Positions 28,801-31,800 of a stretch of DNA of 64,000 nt are shown here, piece by piece (within the stretch, counting starts at the first letter, position 1; each line of letters starts with the position of its first letter). The notes under the pieces are model-generated. The model was not told the origin of the DNA and searched no databases. It saw only the letters and a program-made list of their open reading frames with translations. The stretch comes from Saccostrea echinata. Lineage: Eukaryota. The position numbers were made by a program, and so were the translations under genes. The stretch lies in NCBI RefSeq assembly GCF_033153115.1, contig NW_026889751.1, positions 27,714,001 through 27,778,000 of the forward strand, given 5' to 3'.

Positions 28801-31800
28801 TGGAATTCATTAAACATTTTTACAAACAATACAGGAAGCAGCATCTTTTATAACATACCGGTATATACTTATTGCTTCATATGTTGTTTTATTTTTTTTT
28901 TGACTTTGATACCACTCTCAGGCATTTTGAAACTTGTGACATTATAGGGATGAAATTGTTATTTGTTCCATTCAAAAACTCTTAACTAAATTGATAATTC
29001 AGAATAGTTTTATAAGTTTTTAATAAATGCATATTATGTACAATCTCATAGAAAAAAAAATGCTATGAACAAAATTAGATAATTTTCATTTGGCACTTAG
29101 AAGTAAGATTCTTTGATCCTTAACAAAATATGCACTAAAAAATCAGTATTGGAAATGATAGACAGTCCCTCACTATAGGTCTCTGTAAGATCAACACAAC
29201 TTAGTTCCTATATGCACACTGTAAGACTGAGTCAATACAATCACTTCGTTTGGATTTCCTGGCGAGTTCTCGAGTGAGGCTCACCATCTGTACATGACTG
29301 GTGAACTCGGGAAATTTCTTGATGAAGTAGTTGGGTACTTGTTTCCTCGTGTTATTAGCCCGACTTCTCTTGTTAGCAAACCAAGACTTCACTTGTTGTT
29401 CCGAGATTCCAGTCCTTTTGGCCAGTTCACTTTTCACTTCATCCGATGGGTACGGATTTTCCCTGTTAGCATCGTACCACTCGCTGAGAATCCGCCGAGC
29501 TTCTGGATGAAGTTGCTTGTAGTTGTTTGGTTTCCCATCTGGTCCATTGTCTGAGTATCGCTGACCTTTGAACTTGAATTTGATTGGATGTTGATTGCCA
29601 GTGATGGAGAGAGTATTGTAGTTACGGACTCGCTTGTTGGCCATCCATTTCTTGATCTGCTGATGAGTTAGTCCTGTTTGCTCGGCGAGTTGTTCCACCT
29701 CTAGGTCTGACGGATAAGGATATCGAATGTGCTCATCATACCAGGTAGACAGGATACGGGTAGATTCAGCAGTTATCTTTTTTCCCCGAGGATTTTCTGA
29801 AATTCTTAGCTGCTTTGACTCGATGTTTTCATCATTAGATTCAGGACCCCGTTTCCTCTTGAGAGAATGTCTTCCCATAATAACAGTCTCATCAGTAACA
29901 GTGTTGTCACTTTCTTTTGATTGGTTAGTTTCTTCACTTCTGTCATCCTCTGTCACAAAGTCTCTACTTCTTTTGAAGAAATTCCCACCATTAAAGATAT
30001 GTGTATGTGTGTTTATGTCAAACGGTTGTAAAACACAATTTGGTTTAGAAGGAATTATTGCACTTAACTTGGAGTCATCACTACACTTGCCAGAATCTGA
30101 ATGAGGATCACTTCCATCGGACACACAGGAACTTGCATCATCCTCACATATCCCAGAATCCCCAAGCATGGTCTTTGTCCTGAAGAAACTTGAATCTGTT
30201 TCCTCATCAGTTACAATCTCTCTGCTCAAGTCAACTTCTAAACATTCTGGTGAACTAACCACTTCAGGGATGGAATCAGGTGTATCTGGTCTTTTGACAC
30301 AAGGATTGTTCTGTTTACCAGCAGCAAAAGCTAACTGTCTTGCTACCTGTCCACTGGATTTGTGAGGGAAAGCCATGCTGACTACACCTTTGTCTGTTGT
30401 TAAGAGCGGCTTGCTGATGACATCGTTTGAGGACACATGAGGCAGATTCTTTTTATTTTGGACTTGTTGTAAAATGACTTCATACTGTTGAATGAGATCT
30501 AGCCTTTTCACGTCATGGTGATGATTGACGGCTTTCCGGTGTTGATCAGAGATTCCTGCTGCACACAGAGCCTGATAACGTGACACCTCGATCTGTCCCA
30601 CCTCACCACTGTACGTAGACTCCAGATTTAGTCCCTCTGATCGTAAAGATTCGATGGCTCGTAACTCCAAGAATTTCTCCTGTAACTTCATGTGTCTAGG
30701 AAACACATCACAATGTTCTGATTTCACAGTTGTGTTGTTCTGACTGGAGTCAATGAGATTAGTTGGTACCTGCATGTGTAAGCACTCCTGAGCAAGAAGA
30801 TTTTGTAGATCTCTGAACATGGGGTTCTTCTGTAGCCGTTTGAGATAAGCATGGTGGTGATGTGATTCAGCGGGGGGCATCAGTGACGGAGGTGACATGA
30901 GAAATGGAGACAAAGGCACCGGCGGAATGGGGGAGGTGAATGGTGACAGTGTGTGGGTGATAGAGGGAGGGGAGAATATCTCCAGGTCGCCTGGCCTTGT
31001 CCCTGCAGGGAGGTGTCTCTGGGTGGTGCTGGAACTGGGTGGTGGCAAGGAGAAGAGGCTGAGTCCATGCCTCAGAGAAATGCTGTGGTCCATTCCATCA
31101 ATCAGGGAGGAAAACATCATCTTGATTCTGTTATGTTTATCTCACAGTGTGTTAGAATTTTAAAAGTTGATATATCACATGATATCACTCAAATTCCAAC
31201 ATTTAACGAATTGTACTGTTCAGGCTTCACATCCGTATATATTTTATCTCCACTTTGAAGCAGAATCTTTGAGTAAAAGTCTTAAATCAGTACATATAGC
31301 CACACTAATGTTGACAAGAAAGCTCAGAATGAAGTTGTGCTCTTGAGTTCTAGTTATGAAATGATGTTCCATAGTTTGCTATGCAGTTTTTATTTGAAAT
31401 GTTTAAAATCACACATTAAGAACATATGAGGAGTAGCTCAGTATATTTACACCTCTGTGTCACCTGAGACAGGTATAGGAGTGGAGAGGTGTGTAAACCT
31501 ATTGTCTTTGGTGGGGAAGTTGTGTTTTCTTAGGCACATCAAAAGACATTAACTGTAATGGGGCTCTGTTTATGCAGGCCCTAACAGAAGGTCTCTCAAT
31601 GACAAGAGGAGGATTGCAGTCAAAACAAGCAGTAGATAGGTACAGATGGGCAGGTAAGGGAAGGCTTTGATGTTTACCTGCTTATCTAGACAGGTGTGAT
31701 AATTATCCTCCACACACAGGTAGAGCTAGCTAATTGTTCTAACTACACCACATTATCTATTGACTGGATGATTGCTGTACAATAATTAGATAAGTACAGA

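Follow-up and report, generated by a model that had tools for sequence, protein, structure and literature searches.

A single-exon TALE gene with two homeodomains, very probably the Saccostrea ortholog of CgTALE14, lies antisense within an ATR intron

Introduction

TALE genes with two homeodomains constitute the clade TALE-IV, and this multi-homeobox state had previously been unseen among TALE genes (Barton-Owen et al. 2018, PMC6118893). Clade IV was set up with Cgi_TALE7, Cgi_TALE8 and Cgi_TALE14 of Crassostrea gigas, the last being CGI_10021576 (Paps et al. 2015, PMC5322547). The two-homeodomain TALE genes were placed in the SPILE B-clade by Morino 2017 and 2021. Every B-clade SPILE gene has two homeodomains, and the features given for the clade are "two homeodomains, modified PADRE domain" (Table 1, PMC8524836). 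C. gigas has three B-clade SPILE genes (Morino 2021, PMC8524836), and CgTALE14 (EKC39699) is listed as a TALE-IV, SPILE B-clade gene (Table S2, Morino 2021, PMC8524836). Here we describe a gene of this kind in a 64,000-nucleotide stretch of the Saccostrea echinata genome (assembly GCF_033153115.1, contig NW_026889751.1, positions 27,714,001 to 27,778,000; hereafter the window, numbered from its first letter). The gene lies on the minus strand at 29201-31120, within an intron of the ATR gene, and is very probably the Saccostrea ortholog of CgTALE14, that is, a member of the spiralian-specific SPILE B-clade (TALE-IV) with ancient tandem homeodomains and an incidental nesting in ATR.

Expression has been described for several relatives. 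Expression of TALE1-4 and TALE7-14 in C. gigas spans the egg to blastula stages (Paps et al. 2015, PMC5322547). The mussel B-clade genes MvSPILE-3/4/5 are expressed in the 2d blastomere (Morino 2017, 2021), and in the SPILE literature the cleavage-stage expression of the B-clade is zygotic from the 4- to the 16-cell stage, located in the 2d blastomere in bivalves. Mussel MvSPILE-3, -4 and -5 and limpet NfSPILE-B, for all of which expression is known, are other paralogs or belong to other lineages, within a family whose linkers between the two homeodomains measure 17-41 residues. Like the protein of the window, they carry two TALE homeodomains, with NTLSI(T/S)GN.HPIK after the first (HD1) and Q(V/I)PNYF(I/L).KFPEYT after the second (HD2), and HD1 of MvSPILE-3 has two short stretches in common with HD1 of the window protein.

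Outside this family, the mammalian double-homeobox protein DUX4 (PRD class) likewise has tandem homeodomains on one chain, the early-embryo expression in this comparison being that of the mammalian factors, and DUX4 chains were found among the weaker PDB sequence matches of the window protein. DUX4, however, belongs to another homeobox class, lacks the three-residue loop and is of independent origin, and the resemblance concerns only a possible way of working. PBX/Extradenticle (canonical TALE, PBC) provided the best structure match for HD2 and has the same PYP loop, but differs in having one homeodomain, Gly instead of Ala at position 50, and the PBC-A/B domains.

The open reading frame and its protein

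At 29201-31120, on the minus strand of the window, there is an intact ATG-to-stop open reading frame (ORF) of 639 residues plus stop, free of internal stops and frameshifts and enclosed by an open frame of 646 codons. Judging from the length of the open frame and the 35% G+C content of the DNA, such a frame is not possible by chance. The Pfam search of the 639-residue protein detected Homeobox_KN twice (whole-protein E value 5.9e-31, above the cut-off) and Homeodomain twice, while the same search showed neither a PBC nor a MEIS N-terminal domain. Both homeodomains, HD1 (residues 442-504; 29609-29797, minus strand) and HD2 (residues 530-592; 29345-29533, minus strand), are 63 residues in length, and are separated by a linker of 25 residues (505-529; 29534-29608, minus strand). 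The three-residue loop P-Y-P is present in both (YPYPS / NPYPS), so that the feature defining the TALE class occurs twice in the same protein. Position 50 is Ala in HD1 (WMANKR, within the recognition helix WMANKRVR) as well as in HD2 (WFANKR, within WFANKRSR). Among solved structures, HD2 matched best with PBX1/Extradenticle (E value 4.5e-11) and HD1 with MEIS, PKNOX and MATalpha2. The intact single-exon frame, the tandem TALE homeodomains, the PYP loops and Ala50 described in the initial annotation are thus borne out, and the spacing of the two domains, put there at about 25-30 residues, was measured as 25.

On the N-terminal side, a PADRE-like domain was assigned to residues about 91-227 (30440-30850, minus strand), containing the motif IEVSRYQAL. 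On the C-terminal side, HD2 is followed by a conserved tail (residues 593-639; 29204-29344, minus strand) ending in QCAYRN. The exact protein has already been deposited in NCBI and UniRef; no relatives were detected in a metagenome scan.

Family membership and orthology

A word search of the protein databases with the window protein yielded 83 relatives. The closest is LOC134235321 of Saccostrea cucullata, with 593 of 639 residues identical in global alignment. The next tier, at 66-70% local identity, includes C. virginica LOC144620204 (434/639) and Magallana gigas K1R7U8 (425/639). Lower-ranked relatives came from Tegillarca, Pinctada, scallops, mussels, unionids, Mya, abalone, limpets, Gigantopelta and a chiton, and almost every one of them carries both homeodomains, separated by linkers in the above-mentioned family range. 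In the databases, members of the family are misnamed as "PBX3-like", "Pre-B-cell leukemia transcription factor 4", "mucin-2-like" or "serine-rich adhesin".

K1R7U8 is CgTALE14 (CGI_10021576, EKC39699). It is collinear with the window protein over the whole length, including the proline-rich N-terminus, the PADRE-like domain, HD1, the 25-residue linker, HD2 and the QCAYRN tail, and the differences are of species level only, the window protein having about 20 extra N-terminal residues relative to the 616-residue M. gigas model. As far as the portions of CgTALE14 seen in Dataset S3 of Morino 2021 extend, they parallel the window protein in the MFSS/LEIFSPP start, both homeodomains and the QCAYRN end, and the C-terminus of M. 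gigas K1R7U8 is the same as that of the window protein and CgTALE14.

The alignment of 35 family sequences includes invariant columns NTLS..GN.HPIK after HD1, within the linker, and Q.PNYF....P after HD2, within the tail, in addition to a conserved N-terminal block that includes YS.EVG.IEV.RYQ. Conserved blocks C-terminal to each homeodomain were described for TALE-IV by Barton-Owen 2018 (Fig. 4, PMC6118893). The identity of the N-terminal domain was examined with hhalign, by comparing the aligned N-terminal regions of the family with SPILE ORFs from the S. echinata genome. Residues 96-227 matched A/C-type SPILE ORFs with a probability of 97.4% (E value 1e-11), and a D-type SPILE ORF was matched with 97.7% (E value 2e-12), while E-type and clade-V-type ORFs from this genome, taken as negative controls, gave no match. 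This pattern is in agreement with the description of the PADRE and modified PADRE domains by Morino 2021. Between S. echinata and S. cucullata, all 125 residues of the segment 91-215 are identical, in comparison with 57/63 for HD1, 62/63 for HD2 and 199/226 for the middle region; on these alignments the PADRE-like domain is the best-conserved part of the protein between the two Saccostrea species compared.

A phylogenetic tree was constructed from 100 homeodomains over 63 columns (IQ-TREE, LG+C20), including the window protein, HD1 and HD2 of 41 named family members, TGIF, IRX and MKX of the same genome, eight SPILE-like single domains and three distant outgroups. The rows were anchored to the SPILE clades by short motifs and database proteins, the published SPILE reference set standing outside the tree; at a length of only 63 columns many of the deeper nodes lack resolution, and long branches were flagged. 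Window HD1 clusters with its counterparts of S. cucullata, C. virginica and M. gigas at support 99/96, and window HD2 does so at 99/80; CgTALE14 is the nearest neighbor of both domains after S. cucullata and C. virginica. IRX and MKX of the same genome form a separate clade (96/85), and both window domains are inside the SPILE group (92/90). Firm grouping of both domains with IRX or MKX had been named beforehand as a refuting outcome, and neither domain groups with IRX, MKX or TGIF. Together with the orthology to CgTALE14, the tree bears out the assignment to the spiralian-specific, SPILE-type TALE genes. All HD1s of the 41 mollusc rows, including those of chiton and gastropods, fall into one clade (85/97), indicating that the tandem pair is older than the mollusc radiation; the HD2s form a grade mixed with D-type and E-type single domains. 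As judged from the tree, the tandem arrangement is ancient and was present by the time of the mollusc ancestor at the latest, rather than the product of a recent event.

The kind of gene found here is therefore already known. The novelty implied in the initial annotation does not hold, since two homeodomains in one TALE protein are the published hallmark of TALE-IV / SPILE-B (PMC6118893, PMC8524836) and the gene is the ortholog of CgTALE14.

Selection and transcription

For a relative with about 90% identity, contigs of two sequencing runs cover 29060-32036 and show 281 differences from the window, of which the best-supported 40 were listed. Inside the ORF the list has 26 differences, 25 of them at codon position 3, while the 14 listed differences upstream of the ATG are split 5/5/4 over the three positions. 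This clear signature indicates that the coding sequence is under purifying selection in the minus-strand frame.

For transcription, four runs (word shares 0.05-0.06) were assembled as contigs, and two of them hold spliced ATR and hence represent RNA. Within the intron that houses the TALE gene, the same-species contigs are limited to the ORF and its 3' end, at 29151-29369 (run X1) and 29901-30102 (run X2). X2 is RNA because it also holds a spliced ATR contig; the treatment of X1 as RNA is a guess. The declared RNA library of the relative (X5) covers 29060-31975, leaving out 28780-28971 and the region beyond 32072. The pattern of coverage fits an independent transcript with a long 5' leader and a 3' untranslated region of about 150-200 nt, an ATTAAA being present near 29020, and the gene is likely to be transcribed. 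By analogy with the expression of the described B-clade genes, early-embryo expression of the Saccostrea gene is plausible. A scan for bacterial-type promoters and terminators gave chance-level results, the model being irrelevant to a eukaryote.

Location within ATR

The plus strand of the window carries ATR, as identified by matching its exons singly to solved ATR structures. Open frames at 8599-8847, 28656-28850, 32908-33039 and 34502-34645 match ATR residues 1082-1150 (E value 8e-14), 1271-1306 (human ATR), 1330-1361 and 1408-1453, respectively, and further downstream in ATR there are matches to FAT at 44864-45370 and to PI3/PI4-kinase at 55585-55731. Further upstream, the open frame at 578-760 did not match ATR, and a Pfam UME search of the genome gave no match anywhere, controls included.

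The exon preceding the host intron is located at 28662-28778 (plus strand; about residues 1271-1306 of human ATR), as assigned by the structure match, with its borders taken from RNA contigs: a same-species contig of run X2 runs across the splice from 27329 to 28662, and an RNA contig of the relative (X5) has loose ends at both borders of this exon. The following exon is at 32658-32726 (plus strand), with AG in front, and its peptide can be read from the spliced ATR contig of the relative, which past 28778 encodes this peptide when the base at 28779 is counted; the DNA of this continuation could not be placed in the window with up to 3 mismatches allowed. The GT at 28779 and the AG before 32658, together with the exon matches, indicate that the intron coordinates 28779-32657 (plus strand, with a run of N at 32326-32518) are correct. 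The antisense placement of the TALE gene in this ATR intron, as proposed at the outset, is thus confirmed by the exon matches, the GT/AG borders and the spliced contig.

The same arrangement is present in the close relative, as shown by a contig of its run X4 in which the end of the ATR exon is connected with sequence next to the TALE 3' end; run X4 contains exon-intron junction sequence, and may be DNA or pre-mRNA. An X4 contig lacks a 188-bp stretch (28786-28973) that in the window separates the ATR exon from the TALE 3' end, and this stretch represents an indel or a small inserted element.

Such retention in a relative would be expected if the nesting were functional, and neither ATR nor any nesting of the TALE gene is mentioned in the published SPILE/TALE accounts found. 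In its broad form, the nesting would be conserved in oysters and couple both genes, for example through transcriptional interference with the checkpoint kinase at zygotic genome activation. A separate possibility is that the unlike TALE14-type pair reads a long composite site of a kind undescribed for TALE proteins; we regard these far-reaching readings as very unlikely. In its narrower form, antisense transcription of the TALE gene would tune ATR, or the reverse, in early cleavages with relaxed checkpoint control. This is highly improbable in view of the other contents of the gene. Three further intronless ORFs are located on the minus strand in other ATR introns, at 11230-12912, 22066-23748 and 40694-41986 (560, 560 and 430 residues, respectively). 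They carry matches to B-box and/or NHL, and are thus TRIM-like and unrelated to the TALE gene; the first two are identical at 291 of 560 positions without gaps. Including the TALE gene, ATR hosts at least four antisense single-exon ORFs in the window. Several satellites also occupy ATR introns, at 15826-16721 (166 bp, 5.5 copies), 48560-50334 (168 bp, 10.5 copies) and 51956-52504 (38 bp, 14 copies). The contig depth in the RNA library was 52.9 for the ATR exon versus about 5 over the TALE gene, as rough whole-contig means, and gives no sign of an interplay.

The location also seems not to be kept across bivalves. In older gene models of Mytilus (M. edulis / M. galloprovincialis), the closest homolog, MvSPILE-3-like, is fused to TRAPPC9, while TRAPPC9 of the S. 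echinata genome is on a different contig from the TALE gene. This suggests that the genomic position is not shared with mussels, if the genes are orthologous. The Mytilus fusion models take the C-terminal half of a SPILE-B gene and drop the linker between HD1 and HD2 as a false intron.

ATR introns are evidently permissive landing sites. The initial annotation had called the host gene unexpected; in the light of the three unrelated TRIM-like ORFs, this no longer stands, and ATR as the host of the TALE gene looks incidental.

Two repeats of the window give rise to spurious open frames. The 168-bp satellite array at 48560-50334 produces long frames of this sort on the plus strand. A 224-residue ORF at 7817-8491 (minus strand), without Pfam match, is an artefact of 22 copies of a 26-bp unit at 7892-8463 (99% match), and this repeat is G-rich, which accounts for the GC-skew spike at 8-10 kb.

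Origin of the single coding exon

The lack of introns in the coding sequence, its opposite orientation and its position within an intron of another gene are all features of a recent retrogene, in which the ATR intron would have received the processed mRNA of an intron-bearing TALE gene within the oyster lineage. The initial annotation had raised this possibility. No intron-bearing parent, however, exists in the genome. Exactly two loci with two homeodomains were found, the gene of the window and C29:4291283-4291642, and this paralog, which is CgTALE7/8-like and encodes the 583-residue S. echinata protein XP_061186323.1 exactly, also consists of a single exon. (TALE7 and TALE8 are a tandem pair in C. 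gigas; one copy was found in the S. echinata genome.) In addition, eight single-homeodomain SPILE-like loci are contained in open frames of 306-491 codons, and orthologs built in the same way are present in Crassostrea, Magallana, Pinctada, scallops, gastropods and a chiton. No poly(A) tract follows the TALE 3' end; the sole A-run, 28891-28900, is about 300 bp downstream, within the 188-bp stretch that is absent from the relative. A recent retrogene is thus hardly credible. The uninterrupted coding exon itself is confirmed, and the paralog together with the eight SPILE-like loci indicates that the single coding exon is a long-standing trait of the family, with no sign of recent retroposition.

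Proposed mode of action

Based on the domain organization, we can also predict how the Saccostrea ortholog of CgTALE14 might work. The protein is very probably a nuclear transcription factor composed of the PADRE-like domain, a basic KRKR patch, two homeodomains and a helical tail. The KRKR patch is located before HD1 and is likely to serve as the nuclear localization signal, and the PADRE-like domain is a candidate module for protein interaction or partner binding. AlphaFold2, run with the family alignment, predicted two three-helix bundles with a predicted local distance difference test score (pLDDT) above 90 (about 86-95 over the three helices of HD1, 93-96 for HD2), a helical tail after HD2, and a linker that is mostly disordered, with pLDDT mostly below 50 except for one short helix. 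The low scores of the linker and a predicted template modelling score of 0.38 indicate that no fixed orientation of the homeodomains relative to each other is predicted; in the model, HD1 and HD2 are two independent DNA-binding modules on a flexible 25-residue tether.

The recognition helices of HD1 and HD2 have Asn51, Arg53 and Ala50 in common, but not the base-contacting positions 47 and 54, which are Lys and Val in HD1 and Ser and Ser in HD2. The N-terminal arm of HD1 is basic (PRGKK), while that of HD2 (PNNYKQ, within KPNNYKQL) is not. From the differences at 47 and 54 and the missing basic arm of HD2, the pair might be expected to read a composite site consisting of two unlike half-sites. 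HD1, with its basic arm, would be dominant in minor-groove contacts. By analogy with the published expression of orthologs and paralogs, transcription probably takes place at or before zygotic genome activation, in the cleavage stages, and the probable role is in blastomere identity, in the 2d lineage in bivalves.

Several points weigh against this interpretation of the gene. Both the specificity of DNA binding and the function proposed for the PADRE-like domain are deduced from the sequence alone. No functional test of a bivalve B-clade gene is included in the published SPILE/TALE accounts found, and functional analysis is still called for by Morino 2021 (PMC8524836). The count of codon positions is based on the best-supported 40 of the 281 differences. 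The contigs carry no information on strand, transcript ends, stage or expression level, and some of the RNA coverage may stem from unspliced ATR pre-mRNA or from contamination with DNA.

Implications

The antisense position in the ATR intron of Saccostrea is the sole unreported item of this locus, and is a minor curiosity. The mode of DNA binding by two tethered TALE homeodomains, which is not reported in the published accounts found, is a question for the whole clade rather than for this locus. Otherwise the analysis adds little beyond annotation: the protein deposited as an "uncharacterized protein" can be renamed SPILE-B / TALE-IV, the ortholog of CgTALE14.

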